Shown here piece by piece: positions 19,835 to 47,674 of a stretch of DNA of 64,000 nucleotides. Made by a program: the position numbers and the translations under genes. Positions within the stretch are counted from its first letter, which is position 1. Each line of letters opens with the position of its first letter. Under the pieces are notes generated by a model, which saw nothing but the letters and a program-made list of their open reading frames with translations, was not told where the DNA came from and ran no database searches. Source of the stretch: Rhodosorus marinus CCMP1338 (lineage: Eukaryota; Plantae; Rhodophyta); the NCBI GenBank assembly GCA_029953675.1, contig JAMWBK010000009.1, positions 1,364,001 to 1,428,000 on the forward strand. The letters run 5' to 3'.

Positions 19835-22308
19835 TCATGTGGCAACTGACTTCGAAGCGAGCGTCCTCTCCATGGTCTCAACCCATGAACTCAATTTCTC
19901 GTTGAAGATCTCAGGCACTTCGTCGTGCGGGCAATGGCCTGCATTGAGAAGAGTAACTTGGGCCTGCAAAAAGGGGCGGCCATAAGGTTCAGAAGAAGGA
20001 ACATTTGCAGACCATGGAACTTCGCGATCTCAATGAGCTTACCTCTGGATAGACAACTCCAATATTCCTTGCGCGAGCGCTTGCGTCATTCAGAGGGTCT
20101 TTCGAACCGGTCAGCACTAGCAATGGTCCCGTATAACCTTTGAACAAGTCAATCAAGGTTCTTCTCGAGGGTAACCTTCTCCCAGATTCCAGAACATATG
20201 CTGCGCCAGGGTCAGTTGAGTCCCTATAGATATCTTTCACGAGCCTGAAGTATAGTTTTCGAATATCAGGCGACTGGTATTCACAATCGCTGCCGTTTAA
20301 CAACTACTTACTCGTTAGTGACTTCCTCTGGGCTAGTTGGGTACAACTTAACTAGGATGCTCCGGATTTGCGACTGCAGTAGGAAGATTGCTCCCTTGGA
20401 AACATTTACAACAACCTCGTTCCGGCTGAGACGTTCTTGACTCATACCTTCATCAGGAGCGGATTCTCTACAAGTTGGAGATCAAGCGTTCCACTGTAAG
20501 AGGTCTCTACGCTCATTTCACTGGAAAGGCCGGGGCCGGGGGAAGTGAAAACAAAAATCCTTACCCAAGGCTTCCCGCACTATTCACAAGGACTGCGCCC
20601 TTGCAAAGACTTGGATAGTGATCTGCAACAAACGACATGGACATGTATCCTCCAATCGAATTTCCCACGACGTAAACTGGTTCTCGAACGACGTCTCTGA
20701 CGAAATCAGCGATCTGGGCTTCCCAAAGATGCTGCGTATAGTGCGTTGCGGGCTTCTCAGACCTGATGGGGTCGAGGGCAAGTTAGATGAAATCGAGGTT
20801 CCGATTCCTGGAATTGCCACAGTGTATGATACCTGCCAAAGCCAATCAAATCAAGAGCGAACAGCTTCAAATTTGCTCCTCTCAAGCCCGTCAAGTTCTT
20901 GACAAAGTGCTGTGAGCTGGCTCCGAATCCGTGAACGAAGAGGATCGCAGGTGCATCTGGACTTGACAGGGCGCCCATGGAGCGGAATCGAACTAAACAT
21001 CCTCTCCACAGCCAGTACCTATAGTCCTCAGCAGGCATTCCCAGTAAGTACTGGACAACTAAATATGAGGAACGGAAGCGACTGCGCGGGCTTACTTCCA
21101 ATCAGTCTTTGAATTGAGTGTATCTCCCAACGCCATCCGCCGATGCCAGTCCTTTGCTCTTGCTTTCTCTCCAGCACCCGCAAAGCTCAATTGCGCCATT
21201 GAAACACACCCATAGTTCAGCGGCCGTCGCAGCGTCCTGTCCAGATGACGTGTGAATTCGATTGGAGGGTGTTGGAGGTCTCAAATCATATCCAGTTCAT
21301 GAGCGTACCTGAACAGATCCTTGTTCTCCTTGGTCATTGATTTCAGGCAGACGTCTGGATCCGAAAGTAGCTCCCGCGCGGTGAATGATAACAGGCCGTT
21401 GGTGTTTTCATCATCGGCTTTCTCCATTTCTTCAAGATAGGTGGATGTGAAGACATCTTTTGCATACTCTGACACTGTTACGTCGCCAAGCTTTTCCACC
21501 ATAGAGCCCACGTCCGGTGGTGATGGAAGGGTGGTCGGTGCTGGACTTGGCCGAGGGGTTCCCAGCGAAATCGACTTTAAACCTGCGCCGGATATCAAGA
21601 ATCCAAAAACCACGACATTTGTTTTTTCGCCGCGTTAGAAACCACTTTTGCTGCACCTTTTTCAGGGTCTAGCTGCTCGTGCTAAGGTCGCGTACCCTTC
21701 CAACGTGAATAATGTGACTCTGGATGGGGCATTGAGTCATCTCCAAGGATAGTCTCGTCGACAACATTGACTTGTCCCTCAAAATTGGAAAGAATCATGT
21801 CGTAATTACGTTGCCAGCCATGTTCCGCTGACCTCGTGGCATAGAGTGCGTCCGCCTTAATCTCGCTCGCGAACTTGGTAACCTGTGCAGCAGGGACCAT
21901 CAACAAAGTAAGAATACTAGGTCTGCGCGAGCTTTTGAAAAGAATATCTCGCGCTACCTCTTCACCCGCAATGCCAGACCTCACGAACAGATTTGAGCCC
22001 CTGCTAACCAACTCCTCGCGCAATGCCTCCAGGGCATCGTTCAGGAACAACAGGTCCGCAGGAGGTGAGCCCAGAAGAAGCGGATCTTGTACAAAAAGGA
22101 CCGCCAAGCGATCTTCATTCTGAGCAGCTCGAATTGCCGCCTGATCTTCAATCCGGATATCTCTGTACACCCAAACCAGACCCACATTCCTTCGAACTCT
22201 GCATCGATTTCGAAAGCCAGACGGACCAGCACCTACCCCTAGCGCAAGGGCAAAGCCAGTGGGTCTCCACTCTCCAAGAACACCTGTTTTTTCTGCGTAC
22301 GTTATCAT
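19835..22308 (-). CDS. Photolyase/cryptochrome-like N-terminal domain fused to an alpha/beta hydrolase (At4g25290-like architecture), probably plastid-targeted
   Basis: VWVYRDIRIEDQAAI...FLNDALEALREELVSRGSNLFVRSG (photolyase alpha/beta domain); ILFVHGFGASSQHF...FALDLIGFG; LLVLTGSKDPL; last exon LLNAGHCPHDEVPE. Confidence 0.8.
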
Positions 22309-22973: not shown

Positions 22974-25211
22974 CTAGGAGATCAGTGGTAGCAGCTCTGT
23001 TGAATGCCGCTCGAAGGATTCTAGGATGTCATCCATGGGTTGCATGTTGGCCTTCCGGAGCTTCTTCTCTATGACCTTTGCTGGGACGAACTTGAGTATC
23101 GCATTTCGTGCTTGAATGCCGAGCACGTCCGAGAGGTGAGCTATTTTCATCTGGGTCCGCGCTTCGCCCGCAATTCCATTAGCGATTCGCTTTCTCCTGA
23201 ACTCGTAGTCATACAGTGCTTGACTGTAGCCATCGTGAGCGTTGAAGTTTTCCCTTAGATAGACGCCGAGAGTTATGGCATCATCGATTGCCAGGCAGGC
23301 CCCTTGTGCGGAGTTTGGTGTAACAGGATGTGCCGCGTCACCAAGCAGCACTACCGGGCCTCGACTCCAGTATTTCAGCGTCTTTGAGTCTTCGATGGAG
23401 TGTATGTATCGCTTGGACTTGTCCGTAATCCTATAGAGGTTTTGCAACATGTCTGGCCACGACTTAATGTGAGCTTCCTGTTCTTCAGTGCTCAATTCGC
23501 GAGCCGGGGTTTTGCACCTCTGCTTGACAAAGAAGTACCCAACGGACCTGTCCTTCTGCAGATACCCTACGGAATACCGCATACTGCCGGCCATTTTGAG
23601 CTGCATGTCGCCCTCATTTAGAGAAGCATCCAGTTCGGTACCGCCAAGAGATTGAATTGGAAATGTGCCACGATAACACACCTCCCCACGGAACTCTATC
23701 CTGGCTTCCTCGGAAACGAACTTCCGACCGACAGAGTAGGCTCCATCGGCGCTGATCAACAGCGGAGCCGTCATGGTATTCTGGATTCCCTCGCTCATAA
23801 GCCTTAACTCTACCCCGCTTTTTTTCAGCTCAACTGACGTGAGGGTGGTGCTGTACATAATTTTCTCCCGCGGAATCAGCTTGCTGATTGCCTTCATGAG
23901 CGGAGCCCTCGCCACGAGCAGGAATCCTTCGCCAGATCCATCGACGACATCATCCAGGTTGACTAGCTTGAGCTCTTCGTCTGTATCTGCAATCTTCATT
24001 CGCATCCGGGATACCCGATAAGCATTTTCCCACAGACTGTCCGCGACGCCTAGGGTCTTCAGTGTTTTGATTGCGGACGGCCATAGGCCGAGATCTGCTC
24101 CATTATCTACGAAACCCTTGTCTCGCTTCTCTAGAACCAGATACGGAAGTCCAAGCTTCTCCAGGCAAGCTGCCATAGCCAACCCACCAACGCCACCACC
24201 GCAAATCACAATTCTCTTCTCCTCAGCTTTCCAATTCGCGATCTTCGCGGAGAGGTCGCCATCCGCTTCCGTTTCTCTTCTTCTCCGTAGAGACAGGGTA
24301 TAAGCCGCGCCATAGACAAGCAACAGAAGCAGGCCCAGGAGGCTCCACTTGAACTCGAAAATGCTCATTAACAACAAGGCCAACAGGCTGACTAGCTGGA
24401 GCAAACGCAGCTTGTCTGGCTGACCTCTTGCCCACAGGAGTATGGCCAAAGGAGCGCTCGAAAGAATGGCAAAGGCTGCATAAATAGGCTCCTTCGAATC
24501 GAGCATGCCTAAAATCAGGGCGAGGATGTAACCAGCGGAAACTGACAAAATTGATAATCTAAAACTCGATACTTTTCCTAGCACAACGGGCAACGTTCTT
24601 CTGCCTGTCATCCAGTCGCTCCGTTGAGAAGACATCTCCCAGGCGACGATTCCACCGAATTGGATCAGTGCCATCACGGGAAGTACTAGTCCGTGGCGAG
24701 GTCCGAGCAGTCCTACATGATTCGGTTGAAGCACGCTGCCCAACAGCATCACCAACCCCGTCTTGACCACAGTAACTATCTCCACAAACGGGCCCCTGCT
24801 AACCAGCAGCGGTGGACAAGATACCTGATTTCCCAGAATCAGAATCATTAAAACCAAGGTCTTGTTGCTCGATTTAACAAATGAGACCGCACCGAACGCT
24901 GCGAATACCAGCGCACCCCATCCTACGACCTTCAACGCCTGGAGGGACTCATACCCGTCTTCCCTTTCATTAACACTAAGTCCCAACCTGCTCAGATTCT
25001 TATTAAAAACCCGCTCCAACAATGCGTTGCTCAATTCACCAAGTAGAAGGATCACAAATCCTTGTAGAAATACGCCCGCCCAGACCGTTCCCCCATTCAG
25101 CCCTGCACCAACGCAGTACGGAAGTACGCATGCAAGCAGCACCTTCTGATCTACGATTTCACTGCTCAAATTCTCCGATCGTCTGATTATAGACGAAAGC
25201 AAGGATTCCAT
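22974..25211 (-). CDS. Intronless fusion: MenA/UBIAD1-like (UbiA superfamily) multi-TM domain plus FAD-dependent monooxygenase
   Basis: N-half: VLPYCVGAG, VSCPPL..RGPFVE, SDWMTGRRTLPVVLG and about 8-9 hydrophobic segments. C-half: GGGVGG (FAD-binding), ISADGAYSVGR (DG motif), LLGDAAHPVTPNSAQGACLAIDDA (GD motif). Confidence 0.85.
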   Translation of the reverse strand: MESLLSSIIRRSENLSSEIVDQKVLLACVLPYCVGAGLNGGTVWAGVFLQGFVILLLGELSNALLERVFNKNLSRLGLSVNEREDGYESLQALKVVGWGALVFAAFGAVSFVKSSNKTLVLMILILGNQVSCPPLLVSRGPFVEIVTVVKTGLVMLLGSVLQPNHVGLLGPRHGLVLPVMALIQFGGIVAWEMSSQRSDWMTGRRTLPVVLGKVSSFRLSILSVSAGYILALILGMLDSKEPIYAAFAILSSAPLAILLWARGQPDKLRLLQLVSLLALLLMSIFEFKWSLLGLLLLLVYGAAYTLSLRRRRETEADGDLSAKIANWKAEEKRIVICGGGVGGLAMAACLEKLGLPYLVLEKRDKGFVDNGADLGLWPSAIKTLKTLGVADSLWENAYRVSRMRMKIADTDEELKLVNLDDVVDGSGEGFLLVARAPLMKAISKLIPREKIMYSTTLTSVELKKSGVELRLMSEGIQNTMTAPLLISADGAYSVGRKFVSEEARIEFRGEVCYRGTFPIQSLGGTELDASLNEGDMQLKMAGSMRYSVGYLQKDRSVGYFFVKQRCKTPARELSTEEQEAHIKSWPDMLQNLYRITDKSKRYIHSIEDSKTLKYWSRGPVVLLGDAAHPVTPNSAQGACLAIDDAITLGVYLRENFNAHDGYSQALYDYEFRRKRIANGIAGEARTQMKIAHLSDVLGIQARNAILKFVPAKVIEKKLRKANMQPMDDILESFERHSTELLPLIS

Positions 25212-25448
25212 TCTTACCAGAAAAATTCAAACTGCAGAATGAGAGGTTAGCTCACGTCATCCCCAAGGTGCCAAAGTAGCAAACTCCCACTCCGGTGCTT
25301 CACCAACGTGATCCTTTGGTCCGGTCAGTGAGTGGGACATTGAGAATTCTTCGATTCGGGTTCAAGCCAACAAAAAGAACCATTTTTTTTATGTGGTTTC
25401 ATTGACTGGACTTAGGCTAAAGTCAAGGGTTCCATACAGAGAAAGGGT

Positions 25449-47287: not shown

Positions 47288-47674
47288 TCCCCGCTCATGT
47301 CCGTAGGGCCATTGAATTACCGCTCCTCTGTTTTGAGCCCGAGACATTGAGAGACTTTGAATGCACCGTTGAGGGAGGGAACACTACAGGAGGTATATTG
47401 CCAGACCAAAGTGGGGTCCCCGCTCATGTCCGTAGGGCCATTGAATTACCGCTCCTCTGTTTTGAGCCCGAGACATTGAGAGACTTTGAATGCACCGTTG
47501 AGGGAGGGAACACTACAGGAGGTATATTGCCAGACCAAAGTGGGGTCCCCGCTCATGTCCGTAGGGCCATTGAATTACCGCTCCTCTGTTTTGAGCCCGA
47601 GACATTGAGAGACTTTGAATGCACCGTTGAAGGAGGGACACAACAGCAGGTATATTGCCAGACCAAAGTGGGGT
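47288..47674 (+). repeat. Tandem repeat, 3 copies (129, 129 and 128 bp)
   Basis: The unit tccccgctcatgtccgtagggcc...ccagaccaaagtgggg starts at 47288, 47417 and 47546. Copies 1 and 2 are identical by eye. Confidence 0.95.

Follow-up and report, generated by a model that had tools for sequence, protein, structure and literature searches.

Two workhorse enzyme classes serve the biosynthesis of ubiquinone, vitamin K, plastoquinone, and meroterpenoids: the UbiA-family prenyltransferases and the class A flavin hydroxylases, which normally occur as separate proteins. The MenA/UBIAD1 branch of the UbiA family (PF01040) comprises DHNA or menadiol polyprenyltransferases with a core of nine transmembrane (TM) helices. 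The class A flavin monooxygenases (FMOs; PF01494) of the HpxO, 3-hydroxybenzoate-6-hydroxylase (3HB6H), salicylate hydroxylase, and NicC group are soluble, stand-alone enzymes, and prenyl-chain epoxidases are also found among class A FMOs. In the 64,000-nucleotide stretch of Rhodosorus marinus CCMP1338 DNA analyzed here (the window), relatives of both enzyme classes are joined in a single polypeptide with the following organization.

22974..25211, minus strand: UbiA-FMO fusion, complete and intronless coding sequence of 745 amino acids plus stop (ORF, gene span, sister-strain mRNA)
24276..25145, minus strand: UbiA-derived (MenA-like) membrane domain, residues 23–312, nine-TM UbiA core plus TM10 (Pfam, phmmer, profile, Foldseek, hydropathy)
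24276..24347, minus strand: extra tenth TM helix and RRRR, residues 289–312 (hydropathy, alignment)
24216..24275, minus strand: interdomain linker, residues 313–332, dN/dS ∼0.9 (dN/dS)
23052..24215, minus strand: class A FMO domain, residues 333–720, dN/dS 0.10 (Pfam, NCBIfam, PDB 3rp6, dN/dS)

The fusion ORF starts with an ATG and runs uninterrupted for 2238 nt in the nuclear genome of R. marinus CCMP1338. As the original prediction had noted, it is intronless among mostly spliced neighbors: its coding length equals its gene span (2238 nt), whereas in all seven complete neighboring gene models the span exceeds the coding length by 88–670 nt. This absence of introns in an intron-rich neighborhood is the only oddity of the gene. 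According to the gene models, the adjoining genes are unrelated. By eye, no organelle-targeting signal is evident in the 22 residues N-terminal of TM1, among which acidic residues are present. An mRNA contig of R. marinus MMETSP0011 (L007) aligns with the window in a single colinear block of 2600 nt at 85.9% identity, extends from position 25266 to 22677, and covers both domains and their junction, with an in-frame stop 5′ of the ATG. Rather than the two separate transcripts that would have spoken against a fusion, the sister strain thus provides one message, and the fusion is a genuine single-exon nuclear gene that is transcribed as one mRNA. Read-through of two adjacent genes, one for a membrane protein and one for an FMO, or an error of assembly or annotation has a negligible chance of explaining the ORF and is effectively refuted. 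Apart from the missing introns, nothing was found in favor of such an artifact; the ORF is unbroken in a long-read, chromosome-level assembly (PMC10250338), the junction is spanned by independent mRNA of another strain, and four other independent sequences share the architecture.

The N-terminal half consists of ∼10 hydrophobic helices, as judged by hydropathy. It matches the Pfam UbiA profile (PF01040) over profile positions 69–232 of 250 with 24.3 bits (E 2.3e-5). The match, from the Pfam search suggested in the original prediction, falls short of the gathering threshold of 34.2 bits, which P0004, P0005, P0006, and P0008, relatives of the N-half, clear with 53–80 bits (52.6 for P0004 and 62.4 for P0006). 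P0002 and P0003 are without a recorded Pfam UbiA match. The top NCBIfam models of the four relatives that pass are of the MenA type. A phmmer search of residues 1–325 against 1.84e9 representatives returned only P0002, P0004 (3e-6), P0005 (8e-5), P0006 (1e-4), and P0008 (6e-4), together with one spurious repeat protein. To obtain UbiA matches in the PDB, a family profile of 10 sequences (A4, window protein included) was required, which retrieved chlorophyll synthase (7e-9), UBIAD1 (1e-4), and DGGGP synthase (7e-4); a two-sequence profile of the N-half gave only a spurious RNA-polymerase match among the PDB sequences. A word-indexed search with the N-half alone, a TM-rich query that filled the limit of 8000 candidates, yielded no match and missed even the 88%-identical orthologue.

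Structure prediction of the membrane domain, as proposed originally, also led to the UbiA fold. The best 14 Foldseek matches of the AF2 model of the N-domain were all UbiA-superfamily structures (TM-score 0.48–0.68), and superposition with AfUbiA, DGGGPS, ApUbiA, and UBIAD1 gave TM-scores of 0.55–0.66, although the model is moderate (pLDDT 60) and the match is partly circular because the underlying alignment contained bona fide UbiA proteins. A full-length AlphaFold model from three sequences (pLDDT 40) was discarded. The phmmer, PDB profile, and Foldseek results all identify the N-half by homology as UbiA-derived rather than as a plain membrane anchor without UbiA match, and MenA-type enzymes are its nearest relatives, in line with the original prediction. 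The MenA/UBIAD1-like landmarks named there are all present: LPYCVGAG (31–37), SCPPLLVSRGPFVE (131–144), and DWMTGRRTLPVVLG (199–212). As in the MenA/UBIAD1 branch, the motif 1 relic is located at the end of TM2, YSxPPL-xxxRGxGE extends from TM4 to L4-5, and DxxxGxxTLxVxxG lies in L6-7. The Rhodosorus protein nevertheless scores far below all NCBIfam MenA equivalog cutoffs (PRK06080.x/TIGR00751), with 21.8 bits against 555 for the best model (NF004753) and 20.8 against 277 for the next; relatives with intact motifs reach just 41–48 bits against the cutoff of 277.

The active-site motifs of the prenyltransferase are found at the following positions.

24987..25016, minus strand: relic of the first Asp-rich motif, ERVFNKNLSR, residues 66–75, with N replaced by E66, D/E by R67, D by N70, and D by S74 (alignments to N(D/E)xxDxxxDR)
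24780..24830, minus strand: TM4 signature NQVSCPPLLVSRGPFVE, residues 128–144, with Tyr replaced by V130 and the basic residue after PPL by L136, and with S131, P134, L135, and E144 kept (alignment; PMC4106721)
24576..24638, minus strand: relic of the second Asp-rich motif plus L6-7 loop, EMSSQRSDWMTGRRTLPVVLG, residues 192–212, with the first Asp replaced by S195 (alignments)

In the alignment, of seven positions that are key to catalysis or diphosphate binding, six have changed (E66, N70, S74, V130, L136, and S195), and D199 alone remains. The AfUbiA residues N68, D69, D72, D76, Y139, the Lys after PPL, and D198 correspond to E66, R67, N70, S74, V130, L136, and S195, whereas D202 is kept as D199. 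The first Asp-rich motif, N(D/E)xxDxxxD, reads E66-R67-V-F-N70-K-N-L-S74, with all three acidic positions replaced, and the second, DxxxD, reads S195-Q-R-S-D199, with only the second Asp retained. The original prediction had both motifs lost; its reading of motif 2 as WEMSSQRSD was exact, and these columns align with NNTRDMESD of UBIAD1, but NALLE is not the counterpart of motif 1, which is ERVFNKNLS (66–74), four residues downstream. The TM4 Tyr is replaced by V130, and by I130 in P0002, whereas P0004, P0006, and all standalone relatives carry Tyr. At the position of AfUbiA Y139, 97% of UbiA family members have a Tyr, and single Ala substitutions at the positions considered here abolish either GPP binding (AfUbiA) or activity (E. 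coli MenA) (PMC4106721). The additional loss of this Tyr and of the basic residue after PPL strengthens the earlier view that the N-domain is probably inactive as a prenyltransferase.

Polar residues lining the cavity are kept (R75, S131, E144, D199, G203, and T206), as is the fusion-specific, invariant W200; E144 is a Gln in Purpureofilum. All five known fusions carry D199, W200, G203, and T206 without exception, and nowhere in the N-domain is conservation higher than in the segment of the second motif and L6-7. Binding of a single metal ion by E66, N70, and D199 is conceivable.

The two halves are under different selection regimes. The N-half has a dN/dS of 0.39 (0.23–0.47 in the TM cores and 0.75–0.94 in the loops), a relaxed but real constraint, whereas the FMO is under strong purifying selection (0.10), and the ∼20-residue linker is essentially without selective constraint. 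Between Rhodosorus and Purpureofilum, identity is 20% in the N-domain and 52% in the FMO, which is the reverse of the order seen in the motif-intact pair P0004/P0006 (32% and 26%). The N-halves of Rhodosorus and Purpureofilum can be aligned only over the segment from TM5 to L6-7, which surrounds what used to be the active site. TM10 is present in all five fusions and missing from standalone relatives. From the AfUbiA topology and hydropathy, this helix, which follows TM9 after a turn of only ∼3 residues in Rhodosorus, is predicted to return the FMO to the membrane face that bears loops L2-3 and L6-7.

The C-terminal half carries the three class A FMO fingerprints that had been predicted.

24168..24206, minus strand: GxGxxG FAD (ADP)-binding fingerprint ICGGGVGGLAMAA, residues 336–348 (alignment to 3rp6)
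23718..23756, minus strand: DG fingerprint ISADGAYSVGRKF, residues 486–498 (alignment to 3rp6)
23277..23348, minus strand: GD fingerprint LLGDAAHPVTPNSAQGACLAIDDA, residues 622–645 (alignment to 3rp6)

Their cores, GGGVGG (338–343), ADGAYS (488–493), and GDAAHPVTPNSAQG (624–637), align with the motifs of the flavoprotein monooxygenase 3rp6, which matches residues 333–696 with 4e-25. Pfam FAD_binding_3 (PF01494) covers residues 334–680 over profile positions 4–345 of 349, essentially full length, with 80.5 bits (threshold 22). The NCBIfam models HpxO, PRK06753, and 3HB6H score 127–152 bits, each below its cutoff; the HpxO (152.3 versus 500), PRK08163 (126.7 versus 459), and TIGR01988 (UbiH/UbiF/COQ6 family; 60.8 versus 224.65) equivalog cutoffs are not reached. 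The nearest solved or curated relatives are the aromatic ring hydroxylases HpxO, NicC, 3HB6H, and vanillate 1-hydroxylase. Judged by its sequence, the C-half is an intact class A FMO of the HpxO/3-hydroxybenzoate-6-hydroxylase/salicylate-hydroxylase type. A pairing of the geranylgeranyl-reductase or ChlG-ChlP type was rejected, since the top curated models of the C-half are aromatic hydroxylases.

We found five UbiA-FMO fusions, the window protein and four others, none of which is characterized. Orthologues of fusion length are encoded in R. marinus MMETSP0011 (736 residues) and Purpureofilum (772 residues; its N-half is not recognized by Pfam UbiA), and two RNA-seq-like contigs encode fusions of 749 and 730 residues. 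The catalytic residues are replaced throughout the Stylonematophyceae branch, that is, in the two Rhodosorus strains and in Purpureofilum. Two of the four other fusions, P0004 (SRR12898368) and P0006 (SRR22824290), share the architecture, TM10, and the DW-x-x-G-K/R-x-T loop with the Rhodosorus protein at 31–37% identity in the FMO and 23–24% in the N-domain. Unlike the Rhodosorus protein, they clear the Pfam UbiA threshold, and both E-x-x-D-x-x-x-D and N-x-x-D-x-x-x-D are preserved in them, as are Tyr-Ser and the basic residue after PPL; in P0006, the GD motif of the FMO is disrupted. With acidic motifs and conserved Tyr retained, P0004 and P0006 look like bifunctional prenyltransferase-hydroxylases, which makes the Rhodosorus protein a degenerate representative of a small family. 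Because these motif-intact relatives have a Gly at the Mg-binding Asn position of motif 1, their transferase activity is likewise putative.

A word-indexed search with a profile of the five fusions retrieved P0001–P0003 and nothing further. A metagenome scan with the fusion alignment, keyed on generic FMO patterns (VLLGDAAHP, GxGxxG), returned only ordinary bacterial FMOs of 22–30% identity, none of them near a UbiA gene, and the contig flanks of the SRR12898368 and SRR22824290 fusions contain no identifiable genes. Within ±8 kb of MenA-like relatives, no FMO of the fusion type was found in 80 prokaryotic loci (positive control P0006, 154 bits), so that there is no independent prokaryotic support for a functional prenyltransferase-FMO pair. 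No description of a UbiA-FMO fusion was found in the literature. Far from being common and characterized, which would have gone against the original prediction, the architecture is rare and undescribed, yet not unique to Rhodosorus.

We propose, with what we regard as an even chance of being correct, that an ancestral bifunctional prenyltransferase-hydroxylase lost its transferase in the Stylonematophyceae and that the N-domain was kept as an anchor and prenyl-lipid pocket for the FMO. The ancestor would have been a MenA-like UbiA prenyltransferase fused to a hydroxylase, in which the residues for Mg2+/diphosphate binding and catalysis were then replaced. The N-domain would no longer ionize a prenyl diphosphate but would persist to anchor the protein in the membrane, and a prenylated lipid may still be held in its central cavity and lateral tunnel. 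TM10 would place the FMO on the membrane face to which the cavity opens (loops L2-3 and L6-7), where FAD, NAD(P)H, and O2 could serve the hydroxylation, possibly with decarboxylation, of the aromatic head. From these features, we infer the topology and the role of the pocket, and also the substrate class, probably a prenyl-(naphtho)quinol or prenyl-phenol that resides in the membrane and is the product of a different enzyme.

Squalene epoxidase, with its N-terminal membrane anchor, is an analogue for a simpler arrangement in which the UbiA-derived domain is a mere multipass tether that localizes a lipid-directed FMO and has no specific ligand pocket. The loss of the catalytic residues, the fast evolution of the N-domain relative to the FMO in the Stylonematophyceae, and the failure of Pfam UbiA to recognize the Purpureofilum N-half all agree with a tether, for which a dN/dS of 0.39 and conserved TM helices are equally expected. 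Nevertheless, we consider it unlikely: 10 TM helices are more than a tether needs, distant family members share buried polar residues (R75, S131, E144, the invariant D199-W200-x-x-G203-x-x-T206, and P254), and the only alignable segment of the Rhodosorus and Purpureofilum N-halves falls on the former active site. That the protein still transfers a prenyl group through a non-canonical metal/diphosphate site (E66, N70, D199, R67, R75, R139, R204, and R205) and then hydroxylates the product within one polypeptide appears improbable. The motif-intact P0004 and P0006 suggest such a function for the ancestor, purifying selection on the N-half persists, and the relic motifs have several Arg residues nearby, but six of the seven functionally tested positions are replaced, including the 97%-conserved Tyr and three of four Mg-ligand positions, where single Ala changes suffice to abolish GPP binding (AfUbiA) or activity (E. 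coli MenA) (PMC4106721). Moreover, Rhodosorus and Purpureofilum do not have the same replacements (N70/E, E66/K, and S195/F), as is expected from decay and not from a new conserved site.

The N-domain might also have acquired Mg-independent chemistry, such as the acid-catalyzed opening or cyclization of a prenyl-chain epoxide made by the FMO. Fungal meroterpenoid pathways, in which an epoxidase is paired with a membrane cyclase, provide a model, and the acidic D199 and E144 are conserved in the presumed cavity, the domains are covalently coupled, with TM10 bringing both to one face, and class A FMOs do include prenyl-chain epoxidases. We rate this scenario as highly improbable, since the closest solved or curated FMO relatives are ring hydroxylases and not epoxidases, E144 is a Gln in Purpureofilum, and we know of no precedent for epoxide-opening or cyclization chemistry in the UbiA fold. 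The broader idea that a red-algal lineage repurposed the UbiA fold as a non-transferase module, either an intramembrane substrate-delivery pocket or, more radically, a Mg-independent catalytic chamber, is a long shot; if true, algae would make a modified prenylquinone or meroterpenoid by a new route in which the repurposed UbiA and the FMO share one polypeptide.

The covalent fusion is a “Rosetta-stone” sign that a MenA-like transferase and this hydroxylase clade share a membrane-bound intermediate, and the motif-intact relatives are candidates for an as yet unassigned step in algal prenyl-(naphtho)quinone modification. Rhodosorus and Purpureofilum represent a natural experiment, a UbiA fold without catalytic residues yet under selection, and their N-domains belong to a very small set of candidates for UbiA pseudoenzymes. 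The fusion also offers a handle on how lipid substrates are supplied to membrane flavoenzymes, although its narrow taxonomic distribution limits the practical impact.

The Rhodosorus protein has the homologous nine-TM core in common with the MenA/UBIAD1 branch but differs in motif 1 (ERVFNKNLS), motif 2 (SxxxD), Tyr to Val, and Lys after PPL to Leu, and in the addition of TM10 and a C-terminal FMO; prenyl transfer is predicted to be absent. Its FMO shares full-length FAD_binding_3 and the GxGxxG, DG, and GD motifs with the soluble HpxO/3HB6H/salicylate hydroxylase/NicC enzymes, whereas it is covalently attached to a 10-TM domain and stays below all curated equivalog cutoffs. The pairs of UbiA/COQ2 with UbiH, UbiI, UbiF, or COQ6 combine two matching enzyme classes that act on membrane-bound prenylated aromatics, and the ancestral fusion is most naturally read as their functional counterpart. 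These pairs, however, are separate polypeptides, sometimes in a complex, whereas in Rhodosorus there is one chain, its UbiA part resembles MenA, not UbiA/COQ2, and lacks the catalytic residues, and its FMO lies outside the UbiH/COQ6 family. A precedent for a UbiA fold that senses or binds lipid as the partner of a second enzyme, and is not confined to transferase activity, is UBIAD1, which has a non-catalytic regulatory role with HMG-CoA reductase. Chain 8djk_B, from the HMG-CoA reductase–UBIAD1 complex (PDB 8djk), is among both the sequence matches of the family profile and the Foldseek matches. In contrast to the Rhodosorus fusion, UBIAD1 has intact catalytic motifs, and no covalent bond joins it to the reductase.

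The red alga Rhodosorus marinus CCMP1338 carries the fusion gene on contig JAMWBK010000009.1 of its nuclear genome, which was assembled from long reads (GCA_029953675.1; PMC10250338).

22974..25211, minus strand: UbiA-FMO fusion coding sequence, a single ORF with ATG start, 745 codons
Residues 333-720 of the protein: FAD_binding_3 domain (Pfam), full-length, 80.5 bits against a threshold of 22

In the deposited model, coding length equals gene span. In all seven complete neighboring models, the span exceeds the coding length by 88-670 nt, indicating that these genes are spliced, as had been noted for most neighbors. The R. marinus genome contains 24,821 introns in 8,392 genes, ∼3 per gene on average (PMC10250338). 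An mRNA contig from another strain, MMETSP0011 (encoding the orthologue P0002, 736 aa, 88% identical), aligns across both domains in one colinear 2600-nt block, from 55 nt 5′ of the ATG to ∼300 nt beyond the stop, and carries an in-frame stop codon 5′ of the same ATG. The fusion is thus transcribed as a single message, from a gene truly without intron, as originally proposed; that the fusion is an artefact is extremely improbable.

The downstream neighbor (19835-22308, minus strand; spliced, 607 aa) combines an N-terminal DNA_photolyase domain (PF00875) with an alpha/beta-hydrolase domain (PF00561), and its ORF fragments display VWVYRDIRIEDQAAI and ILFVHGFGASSQHF. A tandem repeat at 47288-47674 (129 bp, 3.0 copies, 98% identity) could be coding, since its period equals 43 codons. 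Neither tRNA genes nor Rfam families at gathering threshold were found in the window (1-64000).

Taken alone, the N-terminal half scores below the Pfam UbiA threshold (24-25 bits versus 34.2) and weakly matches MenA and homogentisate phytyltransferase models. When residues 1-325 were compared exhaustively by phmmer with 1.84 billion representatives, six proteins were retrieved: the Rhodosorus orthologue, two as long as a fusion (P0004, 749 aa, E 3e-6; P0006, 730 aa, 1e-4), a pair of standalone proteins ∼300 aa long (P0005, 8e-5; P0008, 6e-4), and a repeat protein judged spurious. P0004, P0006, P0005, and P0008 pass the UbiA threshold (53-80 bits) with MenA-type models as their top NCBIfam matches, and P0004 and P0006 also contain FAD_binding_3. 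A profile of ten N-domains, including that of the window, matches the PDB sequences of chlorophyll synthase (7e-9), UBIAD1 (1e-4), and DGGGP synthase (7e-4). The AlphaFold model built from the alignment of these ten domains is moderate (pLDDT 60, pTM 0.53; core helices 70-85). All 14 top Foldseek matches are structures from the UbiA superfamily (AfUbiA, DGGGPS, ApUbiA, DPPR synthase, and UBIAD1; TM-scores 0.48-0.68), a match that is partly circular because true UbiAs are in the underlying alignment. Independently of this fold match, the sequence evidence shows that the N-half derives from UbiA, in keeping with the predicted UbiA/MenA-like ancestry.

In AfUbiA, motif 1 supplies N68 and D72, and motif 2 supplies D198 and D202, as ligands of the Mg2+ pair, with assistance from D76, R22, and K146; no position in the family is more highly conserved than Y139 (97%). 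Mutation of these residues in AfUbiA or E. coli MenA abolishes GPP binding or MenA function (PMC4106721). Our column mapping was verified against DGGGPS (NDIFDIEIDR), chlorophyll synthase (NDFYDRDIDA), and UBIAD1 (NNTRDMESD).

Window residues at AfUbiA catalytic columns (family alignment)
E66: AfUbiA N68
R67: AfUbiA D69
N70: AfUbiA D72
S74: AfUbiA D76
V130: AfUbiA Y139
L136: AfUbiA Lys after PPL
S195: AfUbiA D198
D199: AfUbiA D202, retained

D199 alone is kept among the eight columns, consistent with the predicted degeneracy. Motif 2 had been read correctly as WEMSSQRSD; motif 1, originally placed at NALLE (62-66), corresponds to ERVFNKNLS (66-74), four residues further downstream. With so many of these positions replaced, a transferase that remains active in a non-canonical manner seems unlikely, D199 notwithstanding. 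In the Purpureofilum fusion (P0003) these sites have degenerated too, but to different residues (K, A, E, S ... F, D), which points to decay instead of a new conserved site. P0004 and P0006 retain E-x-x-D-x-x-x-D, with Gly replacing the motif-1 Asn, as well as Tyr-Ser, Arg/Lys, and N-x-x-D-x-x-x-D.

The C-terminal half is, by its sequence, an intact enzyme. As originally read, all three class A flavoprotein monooxygenase fingerprints (GxGxxG, DG, and GD) are present. Among solved structures, it is nearest to hydroxylases of aromatic rings: 3rp6 (4e-25), tropone 2-monooxygenase, decarboxylative vanillate 1-hydroxylase, 6-hydroxynicotinate 3-monooxygenase, and 4bk3, a probable salicylate monooxygenase.

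Between the two Rhodosorus strains, dN/dS is 0.10 for the FMO half and 0.39 for the N-half (TM cores 0.23-0.47, loops and linker 0.75-0.94); the N-half is constrained, but far less than the FMO. Rhodosorus and Purpureofilum share 20% identity in the N-domain and 52% in the FMO, and BLASTP aligns their N-halves only from TM5 to L6-7 (residues 145-212, E 0.001). The motif-intact pair P0004/P0006 is more similar in the N-domain (32%) than in the FMO (26%). A104, D199, G203, T206, and P254 are invariant in all ten N-domains, R75, S131, P134, L135, and E144 nearly so, and W200 is shared by all fusions and confined to them. All five fusions possess an extra hydrophobic helix beyond the 9-TM core, followed in Rhodosorus by RRRR. 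Both Asp-rich loops of AfUbiA are cytoplasmic (PMC4106721), so this tenth helix would return the chain to that face.

The five fusions, a count obtained with a degenerate query that fusions on other UbiA subfamilies would escape, comprise three from Stylonematophyceae (two Rhodosorus strains and Purpureofilum apyrenoidigerum) and Logan contigs of SRR12898368 and SRR22824290, one with an A-tract just past the stop. No FMO of this type occurs within 8 kb of the closest standalone MenA-like genes in 80 prokaryotic genomes, and 80 metagenomic FMO loci lack a UbiA gene. P0006 (L003 440-2632, SRR22824290) shows the reverse degeneracy: its UbiA motifs are intact, whereas its FMO has an interrupted GD motif (GDAAHLSSMHNLRGRLQAPSVAVEDA) and a different sequence in place of the DGADLGLWPS region. 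Its called start may be too short, as an in-frame upstream ATG (MAGWGKVSWKVLVRLARSQ-MTLIS...) would add a segment resembling the WLKASRLQ N terminus of standalone relatives. In two myxobacterial MAGs (L073 6637-7920; L039 6767-7915), an FAD-dependent oxidoreductase ORF lies immediately upstream of the MenA-like gene; it matches the FMO profile weakly (E 5e-5 and 1e-4) and is possibly geranylgeranyl-reductase or MenJ-like rather than a hydroxylase. Methyltransferase genes directly follow P0008 and P0005, the closest standalone relatives (L004 1212-2237; L006 1005-1511; one O-methyltransferase with Dimerisation domain, one PEMT/ICMT-family), suggesting small prenyl-aromatic tailoring operons.

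Most simply, the family would have originated as a bifunctional MenA-like prenyltransferase and aromatic hydroxylase sharing a single membrane-bound prenyl-aromatic target. In our best reading, which has about an even chance of being correct, Stylonematophyceae lost the transferase chemistry, strong selection on the FMO continued, and the N-domain would persist as a 10-TM anchor and as a lipid or head-group pocket with the FMO at its mouth. A plain anchor, compatible with the lost catalytic residues, is rather less probable; the retained buried polar residues and L6-7 DW-G-T signature favor a pocket. New chemistry within the UbiA fold is very unlikely. MenA-like ancestry together with ring-hydroxylase relatives, some decarboxylative, is the sole basis for suggesting a prenyl-naphthoquinol or prenyl-phenol substrate. 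The observation behind the original prediction is confirmed and its interpretation supported as far as sequence goes, refined by the motif-1 mapping and the motif-intact relatives.

As a candidate UbiA pseudoenzyme, the Rhodosorus fusion makes a clean, testable case, and it links two enzyme classes in Rosetta-stone fashion; its confinement to a narrow lineage counts against it. The literature, including reviews of algal vitamin K metabolism, yielded no description of a UbiA-FMO fusion, in line with the prediction that none is characterized; the architecture itself recurs in four further proteins. The top curated models for the FMO half (HpxO, PRK06753, and 3-hydroxybenzoate 6-monooxygenase) all fall far short of their equivalog cutoffs, and the model for the UbiH/COQ6 family likewise falls far short of its own. 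Each domain family is well known by itself; what appears new is that the two are covalently joined and that the UbiA domain has been stripped of catalytic residues.
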